Below, one piece after another: positions 3,800-36,584 of a DNA stretch of 64,000 bases. Location of the stretch: contig JBLDXI010000030.1 of NCBI GenBank assembly GCA_047495785.1, forward strand, positions 1,302,001-1,366,000. Direction: 5' to 3'. The translations under genes and the position numbers were made by a program. Under the pieces are notes generated by a model that ran no database searches, was not told the origin of the DNA, and saw nothing but the letters and a program-made list of their open reading frames with translations. Position 1 is the first letter of the stretch. Each line of letters begins with the position of its first letter. The DNA is from Lepidodermella squamata (taxonomy: Eukaryota > Animalia > Gastrotricha).

Positions 3800-6700
3800 T
3801 CAGAGATACTCGTTTTCTTGTTTGATCAAAGTAATCTCTAAAATTTTAGCCCGGAGTTGTTTGAAGGAAGGTCTGTCTTCATACGTATGGATCCAGCAGA
3901 TCTTCATGATATCATTGTATCTGCAACAACATGTTCAAGAGAAGAATCGGAATACAAGAAAGAAAAACTAACATTTTATCGGGGCAAGCAGGTGGCTTCG
4001 GCAAGCGAAGACCTTGGCAAACGTGGAAGATCACTTCCATGCCTAGCAATTGATCGTATGGCTCCGATTCACAATCTACCAGATAGGATATACACGTTTC
4101 ATTTTGATGGACCCTTGGGTTCGCTTACTTGTGAACATTTCCCACATAACAACGCCGAAAGACCAAACATCACTCTTGAGGACGAAAATCTTACGCATCA
4201 ATGATTCGGGCGGATGCCATCTAACAGGAATTGCGGATTCATGCTCATCAGACGTTCGATAATAGCAGCCTTCATCGTCTAAAACTCGAGACAATCCAAA
4301 GTCGGAGATCTTGCAGGTCATGCCATCGGATAGCAGTACGTTTCGACAAGCTAAATCTCGATGCATGCAATTCTTGGAATGAAGGTACACCATTCCTTCG
4401 CAAATTTCACTGATGAACCTTAATCTACTTGTTAAGCTAACCTCGGAAACTTTCCTGGTCTTGAGGAAGTCTTTAAGGGTCCCGTTTTTCATGAAAGGTA
4501 CTGTCAGGTGGGGCTGATCGTGAAGAATCGCGATTCCAATTAGCGGAAGGACATTAGGGTGGTCGAAATCTTTCATAACATGAGCTTCTTTGATCAGCCC
4601 AGCTACATCAGCTTTCACATCAGGGCGGATGCTTTTCACAGCTACGTCTTGCTCGTCCTTATCAGGCATTCGAAGTACGGCGCGTTGGACTGTGCCGAAA
4701 TTTCCTGTTCCGAGTATCCCAGTTATCTCGAGCCAATTATTGCTAACGTTGATGCGTTCGATGAGAATGATCAGATCCTGAGCCCCTTCCAGTCCTTCGA
4801 GTAACTTGGTGAAATCAGCAAACGGGACGACGTAGTTAGAATCGTGACTGGTGACGATGCTATCAGCCCTAGTCCTCTTTAACTTTCGATGTCGTAAGAA
4901 TAGGAATCCTAGAAGGGCGAGGACGATTAGGACAATAGTGCCCAGAGTTGAAGTCAAAATGATCAAAAGTTCTTCGCCTGAAATCAAAAATTGAATGGGA
5001 AGAAAAATACAACAGATACCTCACCTGATTCTAGAGATTCATTCTCATTCACTCCTTCGATCACAGCGAAGTAAGGATTGTGGCTGTTATAATTTCTATC
5101 TTCCAAGGAACATCTTGTGATACTCTGAGTTATAATGGAATATATGGCAGCCGTTGTGCCTGATTCATTGGGAACCGTTGGGATTTTTAGCTCAGTTTCA
5201 ATGGCCGAAATAGGAATGAGCGTATTCTGAATTCGATCGAATAAGCTCAGCGTTTTACTGAAGTCAGGATCAATAGCCGTTATTGTTATATGGCTACTGT
5301 TGACTCGATAGTTGACCTCGTAGCCTAGGAAGGTGATTCCAGCCAACGTTAAGCTATCGATTCCATCTGGCAGAGATGGCTGTAAGATATCAACTCGATC
5401 AGTCCTTATCCTTAGCCCACCAAATCCGAACATGAGGACATTCAAAAAAGCGGCTGCGGTATATGTGTGGCCAATAGCCGAATTTTTCGTATCAGTAACA
5501 TTCCTCCAGATGAAAAATGGCTCGGAATAGTAGTTTTCGAGCAAACTCTCAAAATCCTTTCGACCAGCTGCCATTGAAGCTTTCGTAGCAAGTTGCATTT
5601 CCAGAATAGCTTTTACAGCCAAAGAAGTCCCAGAAATGTTCACTTCTTTGATCCCAGCTTCGAAGGTTCTGCCAAATTTGCGGTTGTAATTCTGGAAAAT
5701 CAAATAAAAAATATTCCATTTTTTGCTGATCTTCACTTACGTCAATATCGTTCCTCAAGAGTTCTGGAGGAGCCTGTTCCAGGAATCTCCCCGAAAAGTT
5801 GTACCCAACTGGGAAATGAGCCAAGAGGACATCGGCCTGAGAAATGGCATCACTCATATTGAAACCATCGAATTGATAGTTGATCTTTTTAGAATTGTCG
5901 TACGGGAATTTCAAACGCATCGATTTGTCAAGCTGATCTTCTTCGATAGGGTCTCTATTCAAACAATTCAAGTACTGAGTGAAGTGAACAGCCAGTTGAC
6001 CAAGAGTCAGTGTCAATAGGCTGTTTATTTGGTTCTGGTGCAGCTCATCAGTCCCACTGACATTGTGGATCGACAAAAAGGTGCTGTTTTGATCATTGTC
6101 CTCTAATTTCTTTTCGAATGACACTGCGGCATTCTTGTTGATAGAAAATATAGAATCGGTTTTAATCTTTGATCTAGTGATGAAGTACAGCATTCGAGAG
6201 GTTAAGCTGAACAAGCTTTCACTGAACATCGCTTGAACGGCGCAATGTGAACACCATGTAGGCTGAGCCTTAGCTTTGTTCAACGTTTCGTAGGGGTAGG
6301 GGATATTCCTGCCTTGGGTGATGGAGCGGCTGAGGACTATTTGGCCTGCAATATCAGGATGAAGCCATGCAACTGGTTGGAATAGGAAAAGTTCTTGCTC
6401 CACAGTATGATGGCCGCCAAATTGACGCCGGGTGGACCCACGGCCGAGACCACAAGCGGAAGCTCCATAGAAACTTCCGTAAAGATCATACGAGTCCCTG
6501 TTGAATTGCTCCACAAAACCGAGCTGACTGAAGACCTGGTAGTAGGCGGACTGAATTGCTTCATTTAGTAACAACGCGCGAGGTCCTGCCATATTTGTGT
6601 TGATTTTTCAATAATTTCAAGTAATTATTTACCTGATACGCTGACGGATCCAGTATTGATTAATTTTTGCCATTTCTGAACACTTAATTTCACAAACAGA

Positions 6701-7605
6701 TAAGGATCCGCGTTTGCCGTCACGACCCCACGCCGATACTCATCCAACGCAATGGCATTATCATAGTCTATTGTAAGGAGGGAAACAAGCACATCCGTGA
6801 CCGTTGTGTCCAATTTGACATCGAAAAACCGGCCGTCGCCTATCGCGAAGCGACACTTGACGTAAGCCGTCGCGTATGGAACGCTGAAGCCAGGATGTTC
6901 CAAGTAAAACGTGATTTTCCTATTGCCGAAAAATCGAGTCTCAAATTTGATTTAAATTACGAACTGTCACTACCAGGTATCACTCTGTTCTCCCATGGTT
7001 TTTGAGATGTTAACGTTTTTAGAAAAATATTTATCGCTCAACGCTTCGCGGTAGATTTCGCTTTGATAAAACCTGACATTGGAACTCTGGAGTAACGTCC
7101 CTCCAGTGATGCTGATAGTGTGGAAGTAAGTTCGCTTGTACTCGTAATGACATCCGTAAATTGAGCGAATTACCAATCCTCGCTTAGTCCAAATCACTTC
7201 CTGCCAGACGCCAATTGTAGGATAGAAACGGAACTTTCTGTCCGCAATAGGATCTACCACACTGTCTACTTCAATTTTCGAGATTTTGAACACTGCATAG
7301 TTCGGCAGGGGTGTTCTTTGAATGTATCCATCGTCTTCCCTGTGAAAATACGCCGAAAGGTAAATTGACTCCTGAAAAAAATAGTTCACTATCCTGAGCT
7401 AACAAGAGCATTCGAGTCGTAATGCTCTTACGTTGTAGACAACAGTTCCTATTAATCCAGTTGACAACTCGGGAAGCAAATCGGCATTTTTAGTGTCAAA
7501 ATCGGATCCAGCTTCGATGAAATCTGTAAAATGCTCCTCTAGCAATTGCCCAGCCACTGTTAACATGCATATAATGCCGAGATTTAAGATTTCCTCAACA
7601 AACAT
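3800..7605 (-). CDS. GH65/PGGHG-ectodomain receptor tyrosine kinase, copy 1 (8 exons)
   Basis: Signal exon ~7605-7432. Ectodomain exons contain LLPELSTGLIGTVVY, GASACGLGRG, SGTDELH, ISQADVLLAHFP, SEPFFIWRN and AAAFLNVLMFGFGGLRI. TM + kinase exon ~4978-4130 contains GTGNFG, VAVK, HRDLACRN, DFG and SDVWSFG. Two short 3' exons end ...QENEYL*. Confidence 0.9.
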
Positions 7606-7639
7606 TTTTTTTTAAATGCTTAAAAAATTATGCATACAA

Positions 7640-7829: not shown

Positions 7830-10800
7830 TCACAGATGAACGCTAACTACATGCTGAGACATTGAGCCACAGATGTGAAGAAGTTCACCAAATGTTGGCC
7901 GAGCTTTCGGCTCCTGAGACCAGCATGCCAGCATTACTTGATACAATTGATCCGGGCAGATTTCAGGCTTGGGCAGGCGACATCCGTGTGATAGATGAAT
8001 AGCTATCTCCATGGGTTGCAAATCAGAATACGGCTCCATCTTGCAATCTAAAAGTTATTTAAAATACATGTAAAATACAGAGCCAACGCCTAACCTGTAA
8101 AAATTTCCCACATTACTACGCCGAAGGACCAGACGTCACTTTTCAACATAAAAATTCGACGGACAAGCGATTCAGGCGGGTGCCATCGAACTGGGACTCG
8201 GTACTCGGTAGCCTCTAAACATTGATAGAAGCCATCTTCACACTCCACTGTTCGAGACAAGCCGAAGTCTGAAATCTTCGCCGTTAAATCGTCAGACAGC
8301 AAAACGTTTCGGCAAGCTAAATCGCGATGCATGCAGTTTTTCTCAGAAAGATACGCCATTCCAGAGCAAATCTCCTGTATGAAACGAAGCCTATCTTCTA
8401 AAGTCATAGAACCAGCGTTGGAGACCACGTAGTCGTTCAACGTGCCCGACGACATGAAAGGAACGATTAAATTCGGCTGGTCTCTCAGAATCGCAATTCC
8501 GATAAGGGGTAGCACGTTAGGATGGCTGAAGTCCTTCATTACATAAGCTTCTTTGATCAACCCAGCCACATCAGCTTTCACATCAGGTCGGATGCTTTTC
8601 ACGGCTACAAGTTGTTCCGGCTCATTTGGCAGGCGAAGAACGGCTTTTTGAACTGCCCCGAAATTGCCAGTCCCAATGAGATCAGTGATTTCAAGCCAAT
8701 CCGCGCAGACATTGATGCGTTCTACCAGAATTATAAGATCTTCCGCTCCTTCTAAACCTTTGAGTAACTTTGTGTAATCCGCGAAAGGTTGGAAGTAGTT
8801 ATTTCCGTCTACAATTCTTTGTTGAGTTTCTGGATCTTTTTTCTTGCGACGAAGCAGGATAAACGCCGAGATTGCTAAAGATATCACAACAGTGACCGTC
8901 AAAGTTGAGGCGAGAATGACTTCGAGATCATCTGAAAAATTAAGCCTAGTGATACTATAGCTTAAGGTTTCTGGCTTTACCTTTTGTATCTGGGTCTTCA
9001 ACAATATAGTAAGGATTGTGGCTGTTGTAATTCCTGTCCTCCAAAGCGCATTTTGTGCTAGACTCCGTGATGAAGCTGTAGATCGCAGCAGTTGTCATTG
9101 AATCTTTTTCTGGTAGAGGTAAAGTGATCGAGCTATCTTTCAGCTTGATGTATTTCCCGTTTAAACGGTCATAGACAGTGGTTATTGCGATGAATTCAGC
9201 TTTCATCGATGAAACAGTAATCGTCTTCTCTGTCACTTCATAATCGACCTTGAATTCGTAGAAAAAGGTGATCTGTTTGAAACTCATTGTCTTTATGCCT
9301 TTGGGCAGGGATGGTCGCAGGATATCGATACGGCACACGCGCAGCCTTAGGCCACCAAATCCGGAGATTATCACGTTGAGAAAAGCTCCAGCCGTATAGG
9401 TATGCCCTATTGCTGCCGTGTTCGCGTCCGAAATGTTTCTCCATACGAAAAATGGCCCGGAATTGTATTCGGACATTAACATTTCGAAATCGCATCTGCC
9501 CGATTCAATGAATTGGTTAGTCCCGAGCTGCATTTCAAGAATGGCTTTGATCGCTAGGGAAGTTGCCGGAATCGAAGCTTTCCCACTAGTGTTCGCGAAG
9601 TTCGTAGTGTATTTCTAAGCAATTCAATAATTTAGTAAAAATTGTCTATCCTTTAACATGAAAAACCTGAATGTCATTGTAAAGAATTTGAAAAGGCGCT
9701 TGCTCTAGGAATTTTCCTGAAAAATTGTAACCAATAGGAAAGTGAGTCAGCAAAACTTCCGCTTGGCTGATCGCGTCTCCAAAATTGAACCCTTCGAATT
9801 CTCGATTGCTGGTCTCCACTTTGTCATATGGGAAGTAAAATCTCCTGGTGTTGTCAGCCGCCTCCGGGTCTACGAAATCTTGATTTACACAGGTGAGAAA
9901 CTCGTCGAAATGCAGAGCAAGAGACGCTAGAATGTTCGTCAACAAATTATTGCTCTCATTGCGATGCAGCTCATCTGGACCACAGACCTCGTTGATAGAC
10001 ACGTAGTCGTGGTCATCCGTCAGTTTCGGTGCTAGGAATGCCGAGGTCATTCCGCTGATTTGCTTCAACCGCTGGAAGCTAACTTTACCCCTTGTGGCTG
10101 CGTAGAAGATTCTGGTGGACAAGGAAAGCAATATCTCGCTGTACAACGACTGGTTATAGCAGTGATCACACCACGTAGGTGGCACCACCCATGTGTCAGC
10201 AATTTCGAACGCCATCGGCTCCACGTGTTGAAGCACACGCCAACGATGAAGGATAAGGCTCTCCATTGATGTTGGCTGTATGAAAGCGAACAGAGGCGGG
10301 ATGAAGAATTCGGAATCGGGGGTCACGTGACCGCCGAAGTTTCGCCTCGTAGCACCTCTTCCGAGGCCACACGCCGAGATTCCCGCGAAATCGCTATCGG
10401 TTCCCAAAGAATTTGTTACAGGATTAAAACGAAGAATTGACGGCATTTGGCTGTAGATATTGTACATTGCAGAACGGGCCATTCTATTCAACTTTACATC
10501 ATCTTCACAGCAGATGTAGATTTACGACTTGAGGTGTATATACTTACCTGCAAAGTTAATGAAAGTTCCACCCGCTCTGTTCTGCCAGGCTTTCAAATGT
10601 TGTTCCAAGGCTATGTAAGGCTTTTCCCGCGGGAAAAGATCGAATTCATCGCGAGCGTTTGCGTAACTTCGATCCATGGTCAGCCAAGATACAGTTTTAT
10701 CCATGTAGGTCGCTTCCAACGCCATTTCAAAATTCAAAGACGCGTTTGAAGCGAATATGTCGATTTCATTCACGTTTGAAATCTGATTTTTGAACCTCAC

Positions 10801-11503
10801 GGTATGATACCTGCAATCGTAAATTCAACATGAATCTGTGAAGATAATCAAAAGACTTGCATTGACTGAAGAACTTCATCGTAAACCGCCGATTCTACAG
10901 AAATATCTTGTTCCCTAGCTATTTGTTTGTAAAAATCCGGCTGACGAATTGTCAGTTTGGATCCAATATGAATGGTTGAAGTTTCAACAACTAACACATT
11001 GAAAAACGTCCGTGAGTAGTAGTAATTACATCCCGATATCAGACGCAGGCGCAACCCACTCACTGTGCGAATCTCCTGCTCAAACAAGCCGATTTCATAG
11101 TAGAATTTGAACGTTTCCCTCGTTATCCCTTCATTTGTGTCATTCAGATGAACAGATGCAATGCGGAAAACGGCATAGTTTGGCAAACGAACCCGCCTTA
11201 TAAACCCATCTGAAGACGATACAAACGAGAGCGAATGATAAATTGATTCCTGTATCAAAGGAAAGAGGTTTGAAAATCGCTGTTGAAGCTTCAAATTATA
11301 AAAAAACCCACATTATAAGGAGTCGTACCGATGACTCCGGATGATAGCTCTGGCAATGAATCATGGTCAGGGAGTTCATCGATCTCGATGAAGTCGATTT
11401 TCTCAAGTTGGTCAGTGATAGTGAAACCTAAGCCTGGTTCGTTGAAAATCGAGGCAGCGAGTGTGAAAAGACAGATGGAAGCTATCGCAGAAATTATGGA
11501 CAT
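7830..11503 (-). CDS. GH65/PGGHG-ectodomain receptor tyrosine kinase, copy 2 (most divergent, 7 exons)
   Basis: ORF pieces 11291-11503 (signal), 10848-11294, 10522-10800, 9646-10491 (CGPDELH, ISQAEVLL), 8955-9533, 8090-9004 (TM + kinase) and 7830-8039 (kinase C-lobe) are separated by short GT-AG introns. Confidence 0.9.
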
Positions 11504-12339: not shown

Positions 12340-15300
12340 TTACAAAACTTGGCTGTAGTCACCGCAGTTCAATCGATCCAGTTTCTCTTGAAGCTCCAGA
12401 AACGAGGGCCTTTCCTCGTAGTTTTCCTGCCAGCATTTTGCAATGATGTCATCATATCTATGCATCATATCATCATATCAAAGTTCGATTGATCTTTAGT
12501 TCTTAGTTAAACAAAAGTCACATACATTTTATCTGGGCAAGTTGAGGGTTTAGAGAGACGATATCCTTGAACGATGTGAACAATCACCTCCATAGCTTGA
12601 AGTTGTCCGTATGGTTCTTGTTCGCAATCTGGAAGGAAAATTCGAACGAGTTACACTATCAAAACATGAAATATTATAGTATTACTTGTGAATATTTCCC
12701 ACATGATTACTCCGAACGACCAAACATCGCTTTTTAGCACGTAAACGTGTCTTATCAGCGATTCAGGTGGATGCCAACGAACGGGCACGGCATAATCGTT
12801 TTCATTCGCTGTTCGATAGTAGTCATCCCCATCTTCGAGAACCCGGGACAATCCGAAATCAGATATTTTAGCTGTAAAATCCTCCGCCAACAAAACATTT
12901 CGGCATGCCAGGTCTCGATGCATGCAATTCTTGTCATGTAGATAAACCATTCCGGCGCATATCTGGCTTGAGAAACGAAGTCTGTCGCCGAAGCTCACCT
13001 CGTCGAGCCGTCTTGGTTTCAAAAACTCTTTCAAAGTCCCATTTGGCATGAAAGGGACGATAAGATTCGGCTGCTCGTTAAGGATCGCGATTCCGATGAG
13101 GGGCAGGACGTTAGGGTGGTTGAAATCTTTCATAACATAAGCTTCTTTGATTAGTCCAACAACATCAGCCTTCACGTCAGGGCGGATGCTTTTCACGGCT
13201 ACTTCTTGCTCGTCCTTTTCGGGCATACGAAGGATAGCTCGTTGGACCGTTCCAAAATGTCCTGCTCCAAGGATCCCTTTTATCTCGAGCCAGTCATTGC
13301 AAACGTTGATTCGTTCGATGAGAATGACTAGATCCTGAGCGCCTTCGATTCCTTCAATCAGTTTTGTGAAATCGGCAAAAGGTACAACATAGTTTCCATC
13401 CCCATGGGCTTGAGACGTGTTTGTTGTCGGAACATGTTTCTTTCGATAACGAAGGAACAAGATTATAAAAGCTGCAACTACAACAACGAACAAGGCACCG
13501 AAAACTGAATACAAAATTGTAGCCAAATTATCCTCTGAAATTCAAACTTCGATCATAAATTGCGATTGAGGCCCAAAGAGTTTTACCGTCTGGCGATTCG
13601 TTTTGTTCAACCATATCTACCACAGTGTAGTAAGGGTTGTGGCTGTTGAAGTTCCTGTCTTCCAATTGGCAAGTCGAAACGGTATTAACGGTTAACGAGT
13701 AAATAGCTGCTGTTGTATCTGACGTCTCGGCTACCGTAGGAATTTCGAGTACTATTGTGTCGGATGCAATATGGAGATACCGGTTAGCAATTCGGCTATA
13801 CAATCTCGTGACTTTCTTGAAATCTTGGGACAGTAACGGTATGGTAATATGAGTTCGATTTATGTGGTAGTCCATTTCATAGCCTAAAACATGAATTTGC
13901 GATAGAGTTAGGCTGTCTATACCATCTGGTAGCGACGGTTGAAGAATATCGACTCGATTGGGTCTCATCCGAAGTCCTCCGAATCCGAACATGAGGACAT
14001 TCAGGAATGCAGCCGCGGTATATGTGTGACCAATAGCCGCATTTTCCTCGTCAGTGATGTTCCTCCAGATGAAAAATGGCTCGGAATGGTAGTTTTCGAG
14101 CAAAGTTTCAAAGTCTTTCCGACCAGCTGCCATTGAAGCTTTCGTAGCAAGCTGCATTTCAAGAATAGCTTTGACAGCCAAAGAGGTGCCGGGAATTTCC
14201 ACTTGCTTGATCCCAGCTTCATAAGTTCTCCCAAAGCGGCAGTTGAAATTCTAAATATTTGAACCTCATGTTATGCAGTACCGGGCTAAAATACATACGT
14301 CAATATCATTTCTCAAGAGACCTGGTGGAGCCTGTTCTAGGAATTTCCCGGAAAAGTTGTACCCAACTGGGAAATGAGTCAAGAGAACATCGGCCTGAGA
14401 AATAGCATCACTCGATTCGAAACCGTCGAACTGAGAGTGGGTCTGCGTAACGTTGTCGTACGGAAATTTTAGGCGCTTGGACATGTCCAGCAGCTCGTCG
14501 TCGATCGGATTTCCAATGCTGCAGGCCAAATACTGAGTAAAGTGAACTGCGAGTTGCCCGAGGACGTTGTTTAGCAAATTGTCAGACTGATTATGGTGGA
14601 GTTCATCAGGTCCAGTTACGCCCCTGATCGAAATGAAGTCGGTATCGCTGCTCTTACCGGTTTTCATCTTTGTAGCAAATTTCTCATTCAGAGGTTTGTT
14701 GATTTGCAACAAATGTATAGGTGTGATGGATTTTACCCTTTTGATGAAATATAGCAGTCGGGAGGCGAAACTGAAGAGCCCATCGCTGTATATTCCTTGT
14801 TGCGAGCAATGAGGACACCATGTTGCTGCGACGGCAACTCTTGTAGAAGTTTCATAGGGCACGTTGACGTTTGACGTGAAGGTATTCGATGAGCGAAGTA
14901 ACATAAGTTGTTCGGCCAAATCAGGAATCAGCCATGCAACAGGTTGGAATAGAAATATTTCTTGCTCCACGGTTTGGCGGCCACCGAATTGACGTCGCGA
15001 AGAGCCGCGCCCGAGGCCGCACGCAGAAGCTCCGTTGAAAGACTCATACACACCATCGCTAGTTTTCAAGCCATCTAAATCCACAGCGATCTGGCTAAAG
15101 ACTTGATAGTAAGCTGATCGAATAGCTCTGTTGATAACAGCTTCTCGCGGACCTAAAGAAGATCACAAATTTTATGAGGGTAGAATGATTCAACGAGAAC
15201 GAAGGAGAAAGCCGTTGTTAAAACTAGAATTAAAGTTTGATGGATCATCAGATGAGACCAACCTTTCACTGTGATACTCCCAGTATCAATCAAGCTCTGC

Positions 15301-16258
15301 CATTTTGTGACTTGGTAATCGATCAGTTCATTAGCTGGTAGCGCCATCAACCTTGCAAATTCATCACGAACGATCTTTTCATCGTGATCAATTGTCTGAC
15401 AGGCCATCGTGGATTCTGTAACTTCACCGGTGATCGCAATCTCGAGGTAAGCTTTCCCTGAGAGAGCGCTGTGGGCACTGTGGGCATAAATCCTTGTATT
15501 TCTTTTGCCGAAGGCTGAATCAGGTACGACGATGTCGACAAATCTATGAAACCATTTGGAAAACTGTTTTCAACAATTGAAATCAGTCTCCTTACGTAGC
15601 ATTGCAGCAGCCAACCTCCTTTAAACTTCTCGTCAACTTGACTCCATATCGATCTTGATAGACTTCATCACTCAAAAGGCCGGCATATTTCTTATCCTGA
15701 TGGAACCGAATGGTAGATCCAATGAAACGTTTGTCAGCTTCAATTGAAACAGCGTGGAAATAGGTTCGCTTGTACAGAAAGCTGCATCCGTAATATGAGC
15801 TGATGTTGATACCTCGTTGGGTCGTGATCAGCTCTTGCCAAATTCCGACTGTTTGATAGAAACGATACTTTCTATCAGTGATAATTTCGGATTCGTTGTC
15901 AACTTCAATCGATTCGACTTTGAATACGGCATAGTTAGGCAGGGGCAGACGTCTGACGTAACCAAAATCGTTGTAAAATTGCGTTGATAGGTAAATCGAC
16001 TCCTGAATAATTGGGAAGAGTCGACTCCTTAAAATGTAAGACTTGAAATCAAGTTTAACAAACGCTGTAGACGACGGTTCCTATGATGCTTGATGCAAGC
16101 TCTGGCAGCAAGTCTGGATCGTCGAAATTAAAATGTGGCCCGACTTCTTTGAATTCGATTCGCTTCAACATTTCCGGTATAGATTGGTTTGAAGCAGTAA
16201 CAATGAATGGAGTAAATAGTAGAAGTGTAAGAATAAACATCAATCCCGAGAGATGCAT
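12340..16258 (-). CDS. GH65/PGGHG-ectodomain receptor tyrosine kinase, copy 3
   Basis: Same 8-exon structure: signal MHLSGLMFILTLLLF, GVTGPDELH, TM, intact kinase motifs; ends ...CGDYSQVL*. Confidence 0.9.
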
Positions 16259-17309
16259 TTTCAGCTTTTAATCTTGAATATCAATCAAGATCAGAAATAA
16301 ATCATCGAATGGGAACTGTAGCAAGTGCCAACATATGTTAGGAATGTAAAACACGCCGAAATGCATTATCGGCACTTGAAACATAAGGAAGATAAGGACT
16401 TTGTAATTATTTGGCGTGAGAGTGATTACCTATCAAAATATTCAAGGCTGCTAATTTCTCAATCTATCGATGTATCGAAGATTAAAAGCAGAAAAGCATA
16501 TGTTTAGTATTTTGTATGCTGCTGTTTGCTGCATGCTTTTCAGGTTCGACAAGTTGGCAAAGAAACAGGATGTTCAATCTCTGTCAAATTTTAAGGCGTA
16601 AGACTCGCTCGAGCAAACATCAAAACCGCAAATCTTGACGTTTCAGTATTTAATTCCGTCATTGGCCGAATTCGAGTTCATATCTACCATGCAAGGATCA
16701 GGATCGTTGTGGTTGAAAAAGACTAATTACACAAACTATTAGTGACTTTTATTAACTACGTGCCTCCCAGAAGAGGCATTTCTGAGGGGTTATAAATAGC
16801 ACTTGTTTACATCTGAAAGCGAGGCACGAGGCGGCAAGACCGTTGCTACGTCTTAAGACAGTTGCCATGGCAACGTGTTGAAAGAGACGGACACGGATTT
16901 TGTGTAATTGCAAATTTTACTCGCTGAAGGCTGTGAAAGGATAACGCCATAAATCGCAAAGGCGTCGCCATTATTTTCCAGGGCGACTTTGATTTGACTG
17001 GTTAGCCTTTGTTTTTTAGCCTTTTTTTTATTTTTTAACATGAAAAGCCTAGCTTTTCAGGCGGGAACAAGGGAGAACTCTATGGAAAACCATGGAGAAA
17101 TATAATTTGGCCTTTTTTGACGATTTGGTTTTTAATAGAGCCGGTAGGCATCCCAGCTTCAAAGTTGTTTCGAATAATCGATGCTCTACATTCGTAAGCT
17201 TAAGCCTAAACTCAACAAATTGCACGACTAAATGCTTTCATCACGGAGTCATAGCAACAATAAATTGACCAATCAACGAGCGGTTCAAAGTGCTACTTAC
17301 TACTTGTAA

Positions 17310-17389
17310 CACAATGGATCAGTTCTTAGGAATCAAAGAGGTTGATGAGACTATAACGATATCTGGTATCATCTAACTCCGCTGGAACG
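17310..17389 (+). pseudogene. ~80-bp fragment of the Cys-loop channel gene at 39.6 kb
   Basis: gatcagttcttaggaatcaaagaggttgatgagactataacgatatctggtatcatctaactccgctggaacg nearly matches ~39615-39688, with a CAA>TAA stop. Confidence 0.85.
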
Positions 17390-17699
17390 GCAACTAGGGG
17401 GTATTTTCGGGCCCCGATTTTATGACCAAAGGGTCCTCCCTGTGGTTTTTTCGGGGTTTTCCCACTTTGGCCTGCCGAACTGGGGGTACGATACCCCTCA
17501 TTCCCCCCGTACTTCGCGCCCTGCTTGCGATAAACGTCTCTGTTAAATCACCGAAGACTGGCGAATGGCAATGGACAGGGGCGACACTGTATTATGGTCG
17601 CCATCAATTTAAGCAAAGTGCTCGACACGCTCGATCCGGATAGTGGCGAGGAGTCAAATCAAATCAATCAAAGCAATCAAATCAAATAAACAAATTAGC

Positions 17700-18570: not shown

Positions 18571-21500
18571 TCACAGTACTTGACTAAGGTCGACACAGTA
18601 CATTCGATCTAGGTTTTCTTTAAGCTCCTCAAACGAGGGTCTTTCTTCATAGTTCTGCTGCCAGCATTTTGAAATGATATCGTCATATCTAAACGAAACC
18701 ATGGAAATGAAGTTGTCCCTTAAAAAGGCAAAGTTAACTTACAATTTATCAGGGCAAGCCGCAGGTTTAGATAAACGATAGCCGTGGCTGATGTGAACAA
18801 TCACTTCCATAGCTTGAAGTTCCTCGTACGGTTCGTGTTCACAATCTGTTGGAGAAATTCTCTTCAAAAACAAGATCGAAACTGAAAACAGGATAATTAC
18901 TTGTGAATATTTCCCACATGATTACAGCGAACGACCAAACGTCACTTTTTAGCACGTAAACGTGTCTTATCAGCGATTCAGGTGGATGCCAACGGACTGG
19001 GACAGCATAATCGCTTTCATTCGCTGTTCGGTAGTAGTCATCATCATCCTCGAGAACTCGGGACATTCCGAAATCAGATATTTTAGCCGTAAAATCCTCG
19101 GCCAACAAAACGTTGCGGCAAGCCAGGTCTCGATGCATGCAATTCTTATCGTGTAGATAGACCATCCCGGCACATATCTGGGTGGAGAAACGAAGCCTGT
19201 CTCCTAAACTCACCTCGTCAAGCCGTTTTGGTTTCAAAAACTCCTTCAACGTCCCATTTGGCATAAAAGGGACGATAATATTCGGCTGTTCGTGTAGGAT
19301 CGCGATTCCAATGAGGGGTAGAACGTTAGGGTGGTTGAAATCTTTCATAACATAGGCTTCTTTGATGAGACCAACAACATCTGCCTTCACGTCAGGGCGG
19401 ATGCTTTTCACAGCTACTTCTTGCTCGTCCTTATCAGGCATTCGAAGTATGGCATGTTGAACAGTGCCAAAGTGCCCGGCTCCAAGGATCCCTTTTATCT
19501 CGAGCCAATCATTGCAAACGTTGATACGTTCAATGAGAATGACCAGATCCTGAGCACCTTCGATTCCTTCGATAAGTTTTGTGAAATCGGCAAAAGGCAC
19601 AACGTAGTTTGCTTCTCCGCTGGAAGGAAACGTGTTTGATATTTTTGCAGCATTCTTTCGAGACCGAATGTACAAGATCAGGAGAACCGCTACTATAACA
19701 ACGACTAAAGCACTGAAAGTTGACAATAAAATTACAACCAAGTTATCATCTGTAAAAATTGAGAATTCGATCAAACAAGGGGAATTAGGCCTCAATATTC
19801 TTGCCTTCTGGCGATTCGTTTTCATCAACAATGTCGACTAGGGTGTAGTAAGGATTGTGGCTGTTGTAGTTCCTATCATTCAACGGACATAGGGAGCTAT
19901 CGCTAGCTATGAATGAGTAGATTGCCGCTGTCGTGTCTGACGTCTCGGCAACCGTAGGAATTTCCAGCTCTACCTTATCGGATGCGAGATCGATATACCG
20001 CTTCCCAATTCGACTGTATAGGCTCGTGGTTTTTCTGAATTTCGCGTTCAGATACGGAATGGTGATATGAGTTCGATTTATATGATAGTCGACATTATAG
20101 CCCAAAAGTTCGATATCGAACAGCGAGAGGCTCTCGATACCATCGGGTAGCGATGGTGGAAGAATGTCGACTCGATTGTGTCTTATTCTCAGCCCTCCAA
20201 ATCCGAACATCAGGACATTCAGGAAAGCAGCGGCAGTATATGTGTGGCCAATTGCCGCATTTTCCTCATCAGTGACGTTTCTCCAGATGAAAAATGGCTC
20301 AGAATGGTAATTTTCTAGCAGATTTTCAAAGTCTGCCATTGACGCTTTCGTAGCAAGCTGCATTTCAAGAATAGCTTTGACAGCCAAAGAGGTGCCAGGA
20401 ATTTCCACTTGCTTGACCCCAGCTCTGAATGTTCTGCCGAAGAGGCGATGATAATTCTTAAAATATTCCATTATATTTTGCCTTGAATCTGATGACAACT
20501 TACGTCAATATCGTTTCTCAAGAGGTCTGGAGGAGCCTGTTCCAGGAATCTCCCTGAAAAATTGTACCCAACTGGAAAATGAGCCAAGAGGACATCGGCC
20601 TGCGAAATCGCATCATTCAAATCGAACCCATCGAACTGATAGTGGGCCTTCATAACGTTGTTGAACGGAAATTTCAGGCGCATCGATTTTTCCAGCAGGG
20701 CCTCATCGATCTCATCTCTATTAATACAGGCCAAGTACTGGGTAAAGTGAACCCCCAGTTGCCCTACAATATTGGTTAGCAAATTGTCAGACTGATTATG
20801 GTGGAGTTCATCAGGACCAGCGACGCCGTAGATCGAGATGTACTCATTATTACCGCTGTTCTTTGATATCTCTTTCGCAAGATGTTTGTTTATATAGACA
20901 TTATTTGCTCTGCACAAATCAACAGCGCTCATGTTCCCCCGTTTGATAAAGTATAGCATGCGAGAGGTGAAACTGAAGAACCCATCAATGTAGATGCCTT
21001 GCTGCGAGCAACGAGGGCACCATGTTGATGAAACTCCAACTCTGTTCACTATTTCATAGGGGTTCAAATTTTGTTCGTTAAAGGTTGTAGGGCGGAGCAG
21101 CATGAGTTGCTCGGCCAAGTCAGGCCTCAGCCACGCAACAGGTTGGAATAGAAATATTTCCTGCTCCACAGTTTGGCGGCCACCGAATTGACGCCGCGAA
21201 GATCCGCGGCCAAGGCCGCACGCAGAAGCTCCGTGAAATGTGTCATAAAGCCCCGTTTTAGGGTCAAGTTTCGATTCCGCGATGTTGAAATCGATCTGGC
21301 TGAAGACTTGATAGTAGGCTGATCGAATGGCTCGGTTTATAACATCTTCGCGTGGCCCTTGTATCAACAGTTCAAAATGACAGTTCTTTGTTGAGAAAAG
21401 AAAGTATAAAAATGATACCAACCTTTCACGCTGACGTGGCCAGATTTAATCCTGACATCCCAGTCATCAACTTGAATTCTCATCAGCAAATTAGATCGCA

Positions 21501-22403
21501 AAACCGGATTCATCATGCCAGTGAACTCAGTCTTAGCTGCATCTGAATCGACATCGATGGTCTGAAAGGCCACAAAGGTTTCCGTAACTCCAGCTCTAAT
21601 CTCAATGTCGAAATAGGATTGGCCAGTTAGGGCAAATGTGCTATTCACATATATCGATACGGTTTGAGTATGGTCGGAGAGAGTATTCGGTACAATGATG
21701 GACACGTATCTAGTTAGAGAGATTCACACACCTGTTACAAGGCTCATATTACTTACGATGCATTGTAGCCGGCCACGTGGAATTCTTTGTCAATAAAGAG
21801 ATATTGATATCGATCTCGGAGGACTTCTTCACTAAGAAGCTCGTCGTATTTTTTATCGCGATGAAATCGAATGGTCGAGCCGATAGAATTGTTGCCGGCT
21901 GATATCGAAACAGAATGGAAATAGGTTCGTTTGTACCGAAAGCTGCATCCGTGATATGAACTGATGTTGATCCCTCGTTGAGTCGTAATCAACTCTTGCC
22001 AAATTCCGATTGCTTGGTAGAAACGATACTTTCTGTCAGTAATATTTTCAAATTCATTATCAATTTCGATCGATTCAACTTTGAATACTGCATAGTTAGG
22101 CACGGGCAGTCTTCTGACGTAACCAGAATCGTTGTAAAAAAGCGATGACAGGTAAATCGATTCCTAGAACAACTTTAAGATGCAATAATTTATCAATCAA
22201 TTTTTACGAACGTTATAGATGACAGTTCCGATCCTGCCCGATGCCAGCTCTGGCAGCAAGTCTGTGTCGTCAACATTTAAATTCGACCCGACTTCCGTGT
22301 AATCGCTTCCAGCTAAAACTTGCGCTATCGTTCTATCAGCAGTAACGATCGACGAAGTTCGCAGCTGAAATGTAAGTATCAATATCAATTCTGAAAGTTT
22401 CAT
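18571..22403 (-). CDS. GH65/PGGHG-ectodomain receptor tyrosine kinase, copy 4
   Basis: Starts MKLSELILILTFQL; GVAGPDELH; 4-aa in-frame deletion (ASMADFE vs ASMAAGRKDFE); kinase with DFGM and SFAV variants; ends ...CVDLSQVL*. Confidence 0.88.
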
Positions 22404-26621: not shown

Positions 26622-29600
26622 TTACAAAACTTGGCTGTAATCGCCGCAAGTCAATCGATCAAGCTTCTCGCTGAGCTCATGAAACGAGGGCCTCTCCTCG
26701 AAATTTTGCTGCCAGCATTTCGAAACAATGTCGTCATATCTATACAAAATTGTATAATTTTGAGTGTTCTTCAATTAAGCAAAGTTCACCTACATTCTAT
26801 CCGGGCAAGTTGAGGGTTTAGAGAGACGATACCCCTGGCTGATGTGAACAATGACCTCCATAGCTTGAAGTTCATCGTACGGTTCGTGTTCGCAATCTGG
26901 AAGTGAGATTAGAACGAATTACCCAATCAAACTGTAAATTTAGTTTTACTGGTGAAAATTTCCCACATAATTACTCCGAACGACCAAACATCACTCTTCA
27001 GTACGTACACTCGTCTAATTAGTGATTCAGGTGGATGCCAACGAACTGGGACGGCATATTCGTTCTCATCAGCAGATTTGTAGTAGTCATCCCCATCCTC
27101 AAGAACTCGCGACAGTCCGAAATCCGATATTTTAGCCGTAAAATCATCGGCCAACAAAACGTTGCGGCAGGCCAGATCTCGATGCATGCAATTTTTAGAA
27201 TGAAGGTAGACCATCCCGGCACATATCTGGCTGGAGAAACGAATTCTATCGCCGAAACTAACCTCGTCCAGCCTTCTTGGTTTCAAAAACTCTTTCAGCG
27301 TCCCATTAGGCATGAATGGTACAATAAGATTCGGCTGATCGTTGAGGATCGCGATCCCAATGAGGGGTAGAACGTTAGGGTGGTGGAAATCCTTCATAAC
27401 ATGGGCTTCCTTGATCAGACCAACAACGTCGGCCTTGACGTCAGGGCGGATGCTTTTCACGGCTATTTCTTGCTCGTCCTTTTCGGGCATTCGAAGCACA
27501 GCTCGTTGGACAGTGCCGAAGTGGCCGGCTCCAAGGATGCCTTTTATCTCAAGCCAATCGTTGCAAACGTTGATACGTTCAATGAGAATGACTAGATCTT
27601 GAGCACCTTCGATTCCTTCGATGAGTTTGGTAAAATCGGCAAATGGTACAACGTAGTTTCCATCCCCATTGGCTTGAGATGTGTTTGTAGTCTGAACATG
27701 TTTCTTTCGATAACGAAGGAACAGGATTATAAAAGCTGCAACTACAACAACGAACAAGGCACCGAAAACTGAAGACAAAATTGTAGCCAGATTATCCCCT
27801 GAAATTCAAACTTCGATATAAATTGGGATTGAGGACAAAAGAGTTTTACCTTCTGGCAGTTCGTTCTTCTCAACAATGTCGACCACGGTGTAGTAAGGAT
27901 TGTGGCTGTTGTGGTTCCTATCATCCAACGGACATGCGGAGATTGTGTTCACTATGAATGAGTAGATAGCCGCTGTCGTGTCTGACGTCTCAGGAACAGT
28001 AGGAATTTCCAGCATTACTCTATCGCTCAGAAGTTTGATATACCTATTCGCAATTCGGCTATACAAGCTCGTCGTTTTTCTGAAATCCACAGACAGATGC
28101 GGTATGGTGATATGAGTTCGATTAATGTGATAATCGATTTTATAGCCTAACAAAAATATCTGCGATAGCGTTAGGCTTTCGATACCGTCCGGTAAAGATG
28201 GCTGGAGAATATCGACTCGATTGGGTCTTATCCTTAGTCCCGCGAATCCGAACATGAGGACATTCAGGAAAGCAGCTGCGGTATATGTATGGCCTGTAGC
28301 CGCATTTTCCTCATCGGTGACGTTTCTCCAGATGAAAAATGGCTCGGAATGGTAGTTTTCTAGCAGTTTTTCAAAGTCCTTCCGGCCCGCTGCCATCGAA
28401 GCTTTCGTAGCTAGTTGCATCTCAAGAATAGCTTTGACAGCTAAAGAGGTGCCAGGAATTTCCACTTGTTTTATGCCTGCTTCATAGCTTCTCCCGAAGC
28501 GGCGGTTGTAATTCTGTAAGTATCTGAAATTGATTCATGTCGAATGAAATTGCGACTTACGTCAATATCGTTTCTCACGAGTTCTGGGGGCGCCTGTTCG
28601 AGGAATCTCCCAGAAAAGTTGTACCCAACTGGGAAATGAGCCAATAGGACATCGGCCTGGGAAATCGCATCATCTAAATTGAAGCCGTCGAACTGATAGT
28701 TAGTCTTCGTAACGTTGTCGTACGGAAATTTTAGGCGCATCGATTTGTCCAACAAGTCGTCATCGATTGGTTCTCCAAAGATGCAGTCCAAATACTCGGT
28801 GAAGTGAACCCCGAGTTGCCCGAGAATATTGGTTAACAAATTGTCAGACTGATTACGGTGGAGTTCATCGGGTCCAGTTACGCCCTTGACTGAAATGAAT
28901 TCAGTATCGCCGATACTACTTTCTTTTATCTGTTTAATGAAATTATCATTCAAACGCGTGTTTACATTCCAAAATTGATAAGTTGAGACTGGTTTCGCCC
29001 TTTCGATGAAGTAAAGCATACGAGATGCGATACTGAAGAACCCATCACTGTAGATAGCTTGCTTCGAGCAATGAGAACACCATGTTGCTGCAACTCCAAC
29101 TCTCGCAGAAGTTTCATACGGCACGCTGACGTTTGTCATTAAGGTATTTGACGAGCGAAGCAGCATCATTTGCTTGGCAAAGGTAGGGAAAAACCACGCA
29201 ACGGGTTGGAACAGAAATATTTCCTGGTCTACAGTTTGGCGGCCTCCGAATTGACGCCGCGAAGATCCACGACCCAGGCCACACGCAGACGCTCCGTTGA
29301 AAGATTCATATTGACTGTCGGAATCAGTTTTCGAGTCACCCGAGCCCATAGCGATCTGGGTGAAGACTTGATAGGAAGCTGATCGAATGGCTCTGTTGAT
29401 AACATCTGCTCGTGGACCTAAAGAACATTGCGAAAACAATGATTTATTCAACGAACTCCTCTTTCCTTTAACTTTGCTGTATTTCTGGATGCCCAAGCGT
29501 CACTCCTTCACGCTACTAATAGTGCTTTGAGTCTTCTTCCGTCCACAATTTAGAGCCCAAGGAATTATTAGATAAGACCAACCTTTCACGCTGATACTTC

Positions 29601-30561
29601 CAGTTTGAATCAAGCGCTTCGATTTTTCGACTTGGTAATTAATCAGCTCATCAGGTCGCAGCGCCGGGTTCATCAGCTTCGCGAACTCTTCACGAGCCAT
29701 ACTTTCATCGTGATCAATGGTCTGAAATGCCACAATGATTTCCGTAACTTCACCGGTGATCTCAATGTCGAAGTAAGCTTTCCCCGTGGTGTGGACATAC
29801 ATCTGTGTAATTGTCTTGCTGCGAATTGCACCCGGTACGATGATGCGGACATATCTATGAGACCAATGTGAAAACTGATTGAAAATTTGAATCTGCTTCC
29901 TTACGTAACATTGCAGCAGCCAACTTCTTGAAAACCTCTAGTCAAATTCACTTCGTATCGTTCTCGATAGGCGTCATCACTCAAAAGACCGGCGTATTTC
30001 TTATCCTGGTGAAATCGAATGGTCGAGCCGATGAAACGTTTGTCAGCTTCAATTGAAACAGCATGGAAATAGGTTCGCTTGTACAGGATACTGCAGCCGT
30101 GATATGAGCTGATGTTGATACCGCGTTTAGTCTTAATCAACTCTCGCCAAATTCCGATTGTTTGGTAGAAACTATACTTTCTTTCAGTGATAATTTCAGA
30201 TTCGTTGTTAACATCGATCGATTCGACTTTGAATACGGCGTAGTTAGGCAGAGGCAGTCGTCTGATGTAACCCGAATCGTTGTAAAATTGCGTTGACAGG
30301 TAAATCGATTCCTGAAAAATTTGGGAAAAGCTTGACAATTGACGACCTTAAGAACTGAAGGCAAACGCTGTAGATAACGGTTCCGACTATGCTTGTTGCA
30401 AGTTCTGGCAGTAAGTCTGTATCTTCGAGATTAAAATCGGACCCGACTTCCGTGTAATCGATTCCCTTCAAAGATTGCGGTATCGATTGGTTTAAAGCTG
30501 TAACTATCGATGGCGTAAGCATTCGAAGTGTAAGAATCAACGTTAATCCGACGGAATGCAT
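26622..30561 (-). CDS. GH65/PGGHG-ectodomain receptor tyrosine kinase, copy 5
   Basis: Signal MHSVGLTLILTL; GRQTVDQE; GVTGPDELH; TM nearly identical to copy 3; intact kinase; ends ...CGDYSQVL*. Confidence 0.9.
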
Positions 30562-32668: not shown

Positions 32669-35600
32669 TCACAAAACTTGACTGAATTCCGTACAGTGTA
32701 ATCGATCTAGGATTTCTTTAAGCTCCTCAAACGAGGGTCTATCTTCGTAGTTCTGCTGCCAGCATTTTGCAATAATGTTGTCGTATCTAAAAAAAAGCTA
32801 TCGGAATAACGCCGTCCCTTACAAAAGGCAAGGTCACTTACAGTTCTTCAGGGCAAGCTGCGGGTTTAGAGAGACGATAACCGTGACTGATGTGAACAAT
32901 GACCTCCATAGCTTGAAGTTCATCGTACGGTTCGTGTTCGCAATCTGTTGGAAACATGCTCTTCGAATTCAGGCTCAAAATTGATAAAATCACAATTACT
33001 TGTAAATATTTCCCACATGATTACTCCGAACGACCAAACATCACTCTTCAGTACGTAGACTCGTCTAATTAGCGATTCAGGTGGATGCCAACGAACTGGG
33101 ACGGCATAATCATTTTCATTCGCAGTTTTGTAGTAATCATCCCCATCCTCAAGAACTCGCGACAGTCCGAAGTCCGATATCTTAGCTGTGAAATCCTCGG
33201 CTAACAAAACATTTCGGCAAGCCAGGTCTCGATGCATGCAATTCTTGTCATGTAGATAGACCATCCCGGCACATATCTGGCTGGAGAAACGAATTCTGTC
33301 GCCGAAACTCACCTCATCTAGCCGTCTTGGTTTCAAAAACTCTTTCAGCGTCCCGTTAGACATGAATGGAACGATAAGATTCGGCTGATCGTTGAGGATC
33401 GCGATTCCGATGAGTGGTAGTACATTCGGGTGGCTGAAGTCCTTCATAACATGGGCTTCTTTGATCAGACCAACAACGTCAGCTTTAACGTCAGGTCGGA
33501 TGCTTTTCACGGCTACTTCTTGCTCGTCCTTTTCGGGCATTCGAAGCACAGCTCGTTGGACAGTTCCAAAGTGGCCGGCTCCAAGGATGCCTTTTATCTC
33601 AAGCCAATCATTGCAAACGTTGATTCGCTCAATGAGAATGACCAGATCCTGAGAACCTTCAATTCCTTCGATAAGTTTTGTAAAATCAGCGAAAGGGACT
33701 ACGTAGTTTCCTTCTCCGTTTGCGTGAAAAGTGTTTGAAAATTTGGCAGCTCTCTTTCGAGACCGAAGGTATAATGTCAAGAGAATCGCTACTATTATAG
33801 CGACCAAAGCACTGAAAACTGACAACAAAATGACAGCCAAGTTATCCTCTGCATTAGACAATCTAATCAAGCAAGTTTAATAATGCCACAATATTCTTGC
33901 CTTCTTTGGATTCATTTTCATCAGCAATGTCGACCAGCGAGTAGTATGGATTGTGGCTGTTGATGTTCCTATCCTCCAACGGACATTGGGAACTACCGCT
34001 AGCTATGAACGAGTAAATAGCCGCTGTTGTATCCGACGTCTCGGCTACCGTAGGAATTTCCAACACAATCATATCAGAATCGAGACGGATATACCGGTTC
34101 CCAATTCTACTGTACAATATTGTGATTTTTCTAAAATTCGGGGCCAGATACGGAACAGTAATATGAGTTCGATTCAAATGGTAGTCGACATTATAGCCTA
34201 AAATTTCGATTTCCGACAGCGTTAGGCTGTCTATACCATCTGGTAGCGATGGTTGGAGAATATCGACTCGATTGGGTCTTATCCTCAGTCCTGCATATCC
34301 GAACATGAGGACATTCAAAAAAGCTGCTGCGGTATAAGTATGGCCAATAGCCGCATTTTCCTCATCAGTGACATTTCTCCAAATGAAAAAAGGCTCAGAG
34401 TGGTAGTTTTCGAGTAGATTCTCAAAGTCCTTGCGACCTGCTGCCATTGAAGTTTTCGTTGCGAGTTGCATCTCAAGAATAGCTTTGACAGCCAAAGAGG
34501 TGCCAGGAATTTCCACTTGCTTCACACCAGCTTCATAAGTCCTTCCAAAGCGGCGGTTGTAATTCTGAAATCAAATACAATTGATGTAGAATGAAATTGC
34601 GACTCACTCGATATCGTAAATTTGTATTTAAAAATATTTTCGCTGAAATTACTGAAATTTACCTAGATGGCAACTTACATCAATATCATTTCTCAAACGT
34701 TCTGGAGGGGCCTGTTCCAAGAATTTTCCCGAAAAATTGTATCCCACTGGAAAATGGGCTAAGAGAACATCGGCTTGAGAAATGGCATCATTCAAATTGA
34801 ATCCATCGCACTGATAATGGGTCTTCGTAACGTTGTCGTAAGGAAATCTTAAGCGCATCGACTTTTCCAGCAGGGCCTCGTCTATCGGTTCACGATTAGT
34901 GCAGGCTAAGTACTGGGTAAAGTGAACCCCAAGTTGCCCGAGAATATTGGTTAGCAAATTGTCAGACTGATTACGATGGAGTTCATCGGGTCCAGTTACG
35001 CCGTAGATCGAGATGTACCCATCATTACCATTATTCTTTGAGATCTCTCTCGCAAGATTTTCCTTTATAATATCGGAATTTCTCCTCCACACATTTTCAG
35101 GGTTCATTTTCCCTCGCTTGATGAAGTATAGCATGCGAGAGGCGAAGCTAAAGAAGCCATCGCTGTAGATGCCTTGCTGCGAGCAATGTGGACACCATGT
35201 TGATGAAACTCCAACTGTGTTCACAATTTCATAGGGCTTCAGATCTTGCTCACTACTAGTTGTAGGGCGCAGCAGCATGAGTTGCTCGGCCAAGTCTGGC
35301 ACCAACCACGCAACAGGTTGGAACAGAAATATTTCCTGCTCCACAGTTTGGCGGCCACCGAATTGACGCCGCGAAGATCCACGACCAAGGCCACAGGCAG
35401 AAGCTCCGTGAAATGTCTTATAAAGCACGTTAGTGCCAGGGTTTGATCCCGCGAAGTTAATATCGATTTGGCTAAATACTTGATAGTAGGCTGATCGAAT
35501 GGCTCGGTTGATTACATCTTCGCGTGGACCTAGTATAAAAAGTAAACAAATATCCGAATTGTTTTGAAAAGAAATAATAAGTGATACCAACCGTTCACGC

Positions 35601-36584
35601 TGAGATAGCCTGATTGAATTAGCTTCTGCCATTTGTCAACCTGATTTCCAACCAGCATATTAGCTCGCAAAGCGGGATTCACTAGGCCAGCGAACTCATT
35701 CTTAGCTGCATCTGCATCATCGATATCGATAGTCTGAAGTGCAACAATAGTTTCCGTAACTCCATCGGTAATCTCAATGTCGAAATAGGATTTGCCAGTT
35801 AGGGCGAATGTGCTATTCACATATATCGATACGATCTGAGTGGAGCCAGAAAATGGATTCGGCACGAAGATATTCACGTATCTAGTAAGAGGCGTTTACA
35901 GAACCTGTTACAGGGCTCTTATTTCTTACGATGCATTGTAGCCGGCCACCAGCTGGAATTCTGAATGAAGCAGGAGTTGATATCGATCTCGGTAGACATC
36001 TTCACTCAGAAGCGCATCGTATTTCTTATCCCGGTGAAATCGAATCGTAGAGCCGATGAAATGCTCGTCGGCTGATATTGAAACAGCGTGGAAATAGGTT
36101 CGCTTGTACCAAAAGCTACAGAAGTGATATGAGCTGATGTTTATACCTCGTTGAGTCGTAATCAACTCCTGCCAAATTCCGATTGTTTGATAGAAACGAT
36201 AATTTCTATCAGTGATATTTTCGAATCGCCCATCTACTTCAATCGATTCGATTTTGAATACAGCATAGTTAGGCAGGGGCAGTCGCCTGATGTAACCAGA
36301 ATCGTTGTGAAAAAGCGATGAAAAGTAAATCGATTCCTAGAGCAGCTATGAGATGCAATAATAAATCAACCAATTTCGAAAATTACGTTATAGATGACTG
36401 TTCCTATCCTGCCTGATGTAAGCTCTGGCAGCAAGTCTGCATCGTCAACTTTAAATTTCGACCCGACTTCCGTGTAATCGATTCCATCCAAAATTTGCGC
36501 TATCGATTTGTCTTCGGCTGCAACGATCGATGAAGTTCGCAACAGTAGGAGTGTAAGTATGAGTATCAATTCTGAAAGTTTCAT
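32669..36584 (-). CDS. GH65/PGGHG-ectodomain receptor tyrosine kinase, copy 6
   Basis: Signal MKLSELILILTLLLL; GVTGPDELH; TM similar to copy 4; intact kinase; ends ...CTEFSQVL*. Confidence 0.9.

Follow-up and report, generated by a model that had tools for sequence, protein, structure and literature searches.

Six tandem genes predicted to encode receptor tyrosine kinases with a GH65 pseudo-glycosidase as ectodomain

Receptor tyrosine kinases (RTKs) owe their definition in large part to their ectodomains, and the known repertoire draws on modules of the adhesion type and on modules that bind growth factors. We analysed a tandem array of six genes from the gastrotrich Lepidodermella squamata that would add an enzyme-derived class of ectodomain to this repertoire. 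The array lies in a stretch of 64,000 nucleotides (contig JBLDXI010000030.1 of assembly GCA_047495785.1, positions 1,302,001 to 1,366,000), and this whole stretch is called the window. Several described systems come close to the array. The kinases of plant GH18 chitinase-like receptor-like kinases are of the Ser/Thr RLK/Pelle type and are not tyrosine kinases. These plant proteins (tobacco CHRK1 and about 90 others) share with the window genes a glycoside-hydrolase ectodomain, one transmembrane (TM) helix and a cytoplasmic kinase (PMC5485988), but they have a GH18 fold and an independent origin. Klotho, which is GH1-like, is a glycosidase-derived ectodomain without a catalytic Glu and acts as the ligand-binding partner of an RTK, FGFR (PMC11696049). 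Klotho and FGFR are two polypeptides and Klotho is a GH1 TIM barrel, whereas the window genes would encode one chain with the (alpha/alpha)6 fold of GH65.

The closest enzyme is PGGHG/ATHL1 (GH65, EC 3.2.1.107, PDB 9sd4-9sd8), which was the best solved-structure match by both sequence and fold. Its four-domain order was matched over the full length, and its general acid (human E430) is retained in the window copies. PGGHG is a stand-alone enzyme and not the ectodomain of a TM kinase, and its identity to the window copies is about 20%. Moreover, E574 of PGGHG is replaced by Asn, D301 by Glu in four of the six copies, and the Trp and Lys of subsite -1 are lost. The kinase half resembles RTKs of the MET/MER/TYRO3 type in sequence (E ~1e-43), in the motifs HRDLACRN and DFG, in the tandem activation-loop tyrosines and in the single-pass type I layout. 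In contrast to animal RTKs, the ectodomain is free of Sema, Ig, FN3, discoidin and the other modules usual in these receptors.

A tblastn search with the model of the first gene (g1) as query detected six colinear copies, all on the minus strand at 3800-36584, and none elsewhere in the window. The stop-free segments matching the g1 model were arranged in identical order in all six copies. Splice models were hand-built and scripted: GT/AG pairs were enumerated for each junction, and the ambiguous junctions were then inspected. The six spliced models have lengths of 1121-1159 aa with no internal stops, and each gene has eight exons except g2, which has seven.

3800..7605, minus strand: g1, 1147 aa; exons 7605-7432, 7371-6974, 6919-6633, 6585-5741, 5691-5025, 4977-4129, 4075-3973, 3920-3800
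7830..11503, minus strand: g2, 1121 aa, the most divergent copy; exons 11503-11312, 11249-10867, 10810-10526, 10483-9667, 9614-8981, 8931-8095, 8047-7830
12340..16258, minus strand: g3, 1156 aa; exons 16258-16064, 16002-15596, 15543-15263, 15152-14299, 14250-13587, 13534-12686, 12628-12526, 12457-12340
18571..22403, minus strand: g4, 1153 aa; exons 22403-22212, 22163-21757, 21709-21423, 21357-20504, 20456-19805, 19749-18901, 18845-18743, 18688-18571; intron 5 GC-AG
26622..30561, minus strand: g5, 1154 aa; exons 30561-30367, 30311-29905, 29854-29583, 29417-28561, 28513-27850, 27798-26950, 26896-26794, 26739-26622
32669..36584, minus strand: g6, 1159 aa; exons 36584-36387, 36336-35930, 35881-35592, 35529-34679, 34564-33901, 33848-33000, 32944-32842, 32786-32669; intron 5 GC-AG

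The introns of the six models are 42-165 nt long, mostly 47-62 nt. Their phases (0, 2, 1, 0, 1, 1 and 2) are the same at matching alignment positions across the copies, with exceptions only in g2, in which intron 3 is shifted (42 nt, phase 2) and intron 7 is absent. The splice ends are GT-AG throughout, except that intron 5 of g4 and g6 is GC-AG in a strong AAG|GCAAGA context. The parts of g1 can be assigned as follows.

6633..7605, minus strand: exons 1-3, residues ~1-287; a hydrophobic, signal-like start, followed by the N-terminal beta-sandwich of GH65 and its helical linker
5741..6585, minus strand: exon 4; main part of the (alpha/alpha)6 barrel, with V348 E349 equivalent to the FWD motif (6403-6398), general acid E467 (6046-6044) and S535 Q536 equivalent to the KQAD motif (5842-5837)
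5025..5691, minus strand: exon 5; end of the barrel and C-terminal beta-sandwich, with Asn632 (5502-5500) at the general-base position
4978..5024, minus strand: intron 5, the ectodomain/TM junction; 47 nt, phase 1, with equivalents of 49-55 nt in g2-g6
3800..4977, minus strand: exons 6-8; TM helix (residues ~797-820), juxtamembrane segment and Tyr kinase, with K905, D998, DFG 1016-1018 and YY 1029-1030

A profile of 18 canonical GH65/PGGHG-like proteins, taken from a library search, was compared with each whole spliced model. Every model gave one domain, covering profile positions 16-673 of 697 and residues ~41-737. The E-values of 1e-52 to 1e-60 come from a hmmsearch database of six sequences and show colinearity, while the database-wide significance comes from searches of the PDB and of 1.84 billion proteins. 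This single colinear match indicates that the whole ectodomain of ~790 aa is GH65, including the N-terminal domain with its LLPEL...G.IGTV.Y motif. Whole models were used here because the exon-fragment alignment was poor for exons 2 and 3. When a profile of the six exon-4 peptides was searched against the PDB, the matches were human PGGHG (9sd4-9sd8, E 1.7e-17), maltose phosphorylase (1h54, 4e-7) and kojibiose phosphorylase (3wiq, 1.6e-3). The exon-5 profile matched PGGHG residues 566-648 (E 1.5e-3), downstream of the exon-4 match and colinear with it. Consistently, the protein-language-model features of exon 4 fall in Glyco_hydro_65m clusters, which represent the GH65 central domain.

The same homology was detected at the level of fold. 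An AlphaFold2 model of g6 exon 4 (predicted local distance difference test score, pLDDT, 78) was matched to PGGHG with a query template-modelling score (TMq) of 0.71-0.75. For the complete ectodomain we used the closest relative found in protein databases, P0001.

10001-12391 of L001, a 41-kb eukaryotic metagenome scaffold (ENA ERZ23486764): P0001, 796 aa, GH65-like, a single intron-free open reading frame (ORF)

The Pfam Glyco_hydro_65m score of P0001 is 45.9 bits (cut-off 27). Its AlphaFold2 model (pLDDT 81, predicted template-modelling score, pTM, 0.87) superposed on PGGHG over all domains (target score, TMt, 0.79, E 4e-34), and the next-best folds were a Flavobacterium alpha-1,2-glucosidase and bacterial GH65 phosphorylases. 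The part of P0001 equivalent to g1 exons 1-3 was modelled as a beta-sandwich with linker helices, which also superposes on PGGHG.

The kinase half was readily recognized (Pfam PK_Tyr_Ser-Thr, E 5.9e-63 for g1 exon 6). GxGxFG, (V/I)AVK, HRDLACRN, DFG and PVRWHPPE...SDVWSF are kept in all six copies, and the tandem tyrosines YY are found in the activation loop of every copy except g2, which has YQ. These sequences indicate that the catalytic core of the kinase is intact. The best single-domain PDB matches were MET, MER and TYRO3, followed by Eph and FGFR. An 'EGFR' entry (9p9u, E 1e-64) was rejected as the nearest kinase, because it is a tandem two-kinase construct for which the scores of both domains were summed. 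Hydropathy of the six models showed a hydrophobic N-terminus (the signal segment is called from hydropathy only) and a single TM helix followed by a basic stretch. Each copy has 8-13 N-x-S/T sequons on the outside and 0-2 inside. Both the hydropathy and the sequon distribution are as expected of a type I single-pass receptor.

Reading only the letters of this stretch, an earlier note (the original prediction) had proposed a six-gene tandem family in which each member joins a signal peptide, a whole GH65/PGGHG-like ectodomain, a TM helix and an intact Tyr kinase. The tblastn search, the gene models and the profiles bear this out. All of the kinase motifs that it quoted were found (with IAVK as a variant of VAVK). 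The GH65 resemblance that it had pointed out proved to be real homology by profile, PDB, language-model and fold matches, and the structural check that it proposed for the ectodomain came out in favour of PGGHG.

Does the ectodomain still work as an enzyme? GH65 hydrolases use a Glu as general acid and a Glu as general base, which are E472 and E616 in FjGH65A (PMC8626586). These residues correspond to E430 and E574 of human PGGHG, as judged from the titles of the PDB mutant entries (E430Q, E574Q). The general base is completely conserved among GH65 hydrolases, and so are the Trp and Asp (FWD) and the Lys and Gln (KQAD) of subsite -1 in GH65; an E-to-Q mutant of FjGH65A at the base alone retained less than 0.1% of the activity (PMC8626586). 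Alignment against canonical GH65 members gave the following residues for the window copies.

General acid (canonical Glu): Glu in six of six copies, in G(P/T)DELH (GPDELH in five of six)
General base (canonical W-T/S-E): W-R-N in six of six copies
Subsite -1 FWD motif (canonical F-W-D): TVE in g1, g3, g4 and g6; TVD in g5; TPD in g2
Subsite -1 KQAD motif (canonical K-Q-A-D): S-Q-A-D/E in six of six copies
General-base position, codons of the Asn in g1 to g6: 5500-5502, 9435-9437, 14059-14061, 20277-20279, 28322-28324, 34373-34375

At subsite -1, the Trp is thus replaced by Val (Pro in g2) and the Lys by Ser in every copy; the Asp survives in g2 and g5, the other four copies having Glu, and the Gln is kept. 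With Asn for the base Glu and replacements at two of the four invariant positions of subsite -1, the ectodomain is predicted to have no catalytic activity and a remodelled sugar site, which would make it a pseudo-glycosidase. These replacements argue against canonical binding or hydrolysis of glucosides, and the 'glycan-sensing' function suggested in the original prediction can only be used as a putative label. Phosphorolysis, for which GH65 phosphorylases have a phosphate site of two Ser, a His and a Lys, is also unlikely given the extracellular location. The Asn at the base position stands within an N-x-S/T sequon in all six copies (RNVT, RNIS or RNIT), and P0001 has RNSS there. The strongest conservation of the ectodomain was found in the former active-site loops, namely GASACGLGRG..RR.FGG, G(P/T)DELH, ISQA(D/E)VLL.HFP.GYNFSG, PFF.WRN and GHTYTA. 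This clustering of invariant residues suggests that the remodelled pocket is probably still in use and probably still binds something.

Taken together, we consider it likely that each gene encodes a type I RTK whose entire ectodomain is a four-domain PGGHG-type GH65 that has lost catalysis, and that the former enzyme would now serve as a ligand-binding and probably dimerising module. The remodelled pocket may bind a sugar-bearing or other small epitope, but not glucose in the canonical manner. GH65 enzymes of solved structure, such as maltose phosphorylase, are typically dimers, so ligand binding would reposition or assemble two receptor chains. The two kinase domains brought together in this way could trans-phosphorylate their activation-loop tyrosines (YY in five of the six copies) and start signalling. 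The conserved juxtamembrane tyrosine of NYVVPFADF may provide a docking site, which is speculation from sequence alone. Such a receptor would combine in a single natural chain what the Klotho-FGFR pair does with a pseudo-glycosidase plus an RTK. A bolder proposal, which we put forward tentatively and hold to be doubtful, is that the dead PGGHG reads a carbohydrate-bearing matrix cue via the remodelled pocket, for example glycosylated hydroxylysine on collagen or another glycoside. If so, the receptors would have evolved independently as a single-chain parallel to both Klotho-FGFR and the collagen-sensing DDR receptors, with paralogues diversified for different ligands by tandem duplication.

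Several observations weigh against the likely reading, a single-chain receptor with a ligand-binding pocket. With Trp and Lys of subsite -1 lost, the pocket may bind no sugar at all. The sequon at the base position, if glycosylated, could let the receptor's own glycan occupy or block the old active site. Pfam searches on exon-size pieces gave no Glyco_hydro_65m match at E <= 1, and Glyco_hydro_65C matched an exon piece weakly (E 0.048); the homology emerged with family profiles only. Introns 3 and 4 of g2 have weak splice signals, the weakest of this gene. Finally, the sole public sequencing run with this DNA (X1) is genomic: it contains 95% of the words, introns included, in contiguous contigs with no splice joints, and it gives no support either way for splicing.

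The alternative that survives best, possible though unlikely in our judgement, is that the ectodomain is a structural or dimerising scaffold or binds its ligand away from the old active site, for example on the faster-evolving N-terminal beta-sandwich, so that the pocket is irrelevant to signalling. To compare the domains, we made pairwise Nei-Gojobori estimates of nonsynonymous to synonymous substitution (dN/dS) between the copies. The values were 0.06-0.11 for the kinase, 0.16-0.29 for the barrel and C domain, 0.06-0.39 for the TM and juxtamembrane part and 0.31-0.56 for the N-terminal domain, with dS ranging from 0.35 to saturation. Every domain is under purifying selection and the genes are intact. 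The N-terminal domain is the most variable between paralogues, as would be expected of a diversifying recognition surface, and both the subsite -1 losses and the conserved sequon that could plug the pocket fit this alternative as well. However, the strongest ectodomain conservation lies in the former active-site loops, which is hard to explain with a functionless pocket.

It is improbable that catalysis persists and that the ectodomain works as a glycosidase or transglycosylase tethered to the membrane and coupled to the kinase, with another residue or a substrate group acting as the base. The retained general acid and the retained Gln of KQAD speak for residual activity, and alpha-Klotho, which is without a catalytic Glu, was reported to keep weak activity (PMC11696049). 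In contrast, every copy has Asn at the base, where E-to-Q mutants fall below 0.1% activity (PMC8626586), and no copy retains the otherwise completely conserved Trp or Lys.

A further alternative is that ectodomain and kinase come from separate neighbouring genes (a secreted GH65-like protein, then a TM kinase) and are wrongly joined in our models. The genomic X1 reads leave room for this, and P0001 is a stand-alone protein that lacks a kinase and carries a hydrophobic anchor at its C-terminus. Nevertheless, the gap is only 47-55 nt with GT/GC-AG ends, and its position and phase are constant in six copies diverged from dS 0.35 to saturation. The frame shifts across intron 5 in five of the six copies, and intron 5 of g5 holds an in-frame stop. 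Exon 6 starts within the pre-TM segment, and in none of the six copies does an in-frame Met precede the glycine loop. If intron 5 were not removed, the exon-5 frame would end at a stop a few codons further on and the product would have no anchor. Since intron 5 is short and conserved and exon 6 is without a start codon, we infer from the gene structure that ectodomain and kinase are on one transcript, and we regard separate genes as very improbable. The intron positions given earlier at this junction (~5023-4979 in g1 and ~13587-13533 in g3) agree within 1-2 nt with our models (5024-4978 and 13586-13535). The claim that each copy splices through short GT-AG introns holds for short introns at conserved positions, with GC-AG at intron 5 of g4 and g6, and it is from gene structure that the splicing is read.

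That the array consists of decaying pseudogenes or is a misassembled repeat is scarcely credible: a tandem multi-copy array and variant contigs at about one third depth at two places in X1 would fit it, but the six ORFs of ~3.4 kb are intact despite dS of 0.35 to saturation, dN/dS is well below 1 in all domains, the exon-4 proteins differ by 18-57% and are not collapsed repeats, and independent X1 contigs tile the region with no differences.

Relatives of the array were searched for in large protein collections. A HMMER search with the exon-4 profile in 1.84 billion representative proteins gave 190 matches at E <= 0.001, and the single match below 1e-30 was P0001. None of the best 150 of these 190 GH65-like matches contained the kinase motifs; no kinase domain was found in P0006, P0054 and P0098, three GH65-like proteins of more than 1000 aa in which it was looked for. 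Word-index searches of 5.8 billion proteins with P0001, the kinase exon and the combined alignment returned no fused relative, only P0001 and one 40%-identical kinase. No kinase of comparable length (155-495 aa) matched better than the latter, which adjoins a CUB-domain ORF. A scan of JGI metagenome contigs found no relative.

P0001 is the only close ectodomain relative found in these searches. It is similar to the window genes (E 2e-51, 31-36% identity to exons 4 and 5), with WRN at the base position and S for K in KQAD. It differs in having no kinase, no introns, a hydrophobic C-terminal tail (a glycosylphosphatidylinositol signal or a TM anchor) and DKLH in place of the general-acid motif, so that the general acid is lost. 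Many canonical invertebrate-type GH65 members among the matches listed also end in hydrophobic tails, which makes extracellular anchored GH65 proteins a plausible source of the fusion. On its scaffold, P0001 is neighboured by ankyrin-repeat, ELO and SSF transporter genes.

Full-text literature searches turned up no paper joining receptor tyrosine kinases with GH65, and a holozoan tyrosine-kinome survey makes no mention of a GH65 architecture. A 2024 review of GH65 mentions no transmembrane or kinase fusions (PMC11442529). A GH65 ectodomain on a Tyr kinase is therefore not described in the literature and databases searched. The suggestion that no RTK of this kind was known stood for the 150 listed hits and this literature; the concept of a kinase with an enzyme ectodomain is not new, having precedents in the plant GH18 kinases and Klotho. 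The view of an expanded family particular to this lineage was likewise upheld, with six paralogues and, in these searches, no relative outside this genome except the kinase-less P0001. In this family a complete four-domain glycosidase would have been recruited, with loss of catalysis predicted, and kept under selection in at least six paralogues, which would extend GH65 biology to a TM/kinase fusion. It may offer a tractable case of the way from enzyme to receptor, in which the general acid survives, the base has gone together with sugar-binding residues, and conservation is still highest in the loops of the pocket.

The history of the array can be read from the divergence of its copies. Exon-4 protein identity to g6 ranges from 43 to 82%. 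The closest pairs, with the lowest dN and dS, are g3-g5 and g4-g6 (12340-22403 versus 26622-36584). This pairing, together with the GC-AG intron 5 common to g4 and g6, indicates duplication of a two-gene block (g4+g3 to g6+g5), so that the array appears to have grown by tandem duplication, partly as a two-gene block. The outlier is g2, which is ~43% identical to g6 in exon 4, has the YQ activation loop and keeps the Asp in TPD; it is intact and under purifying selection. At 5857-5951 and 9348-9444, alternative X1 contigs with clustered substitutions were present at about one third of the local depth; they probably stem from a second haplotype or from a near-identical copy at another place.

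Other genes noted in the window are listed below.

1480-2600, plus strand, and 3045-3785, plus strand, beside the 3800 end of the array: a gene for a papain-family protease of the cathepsin-L type and one for an astacin metalloprotease (Pfam Astacin, E 8e-14)
38120-40586, plus strand, and 41672-43106, minus strand: two Cys-loop (pentameric ligand-gated) channel genes adjoining the array (Neur_chan_LBD and Neur_chan_memb matches)
~57900-63100, minus strand: a Helitron-type element whose consecutive ORFs encode Helitron_like_N (E 5e-60), then PIF1 helicase and the Pif1 2B domain

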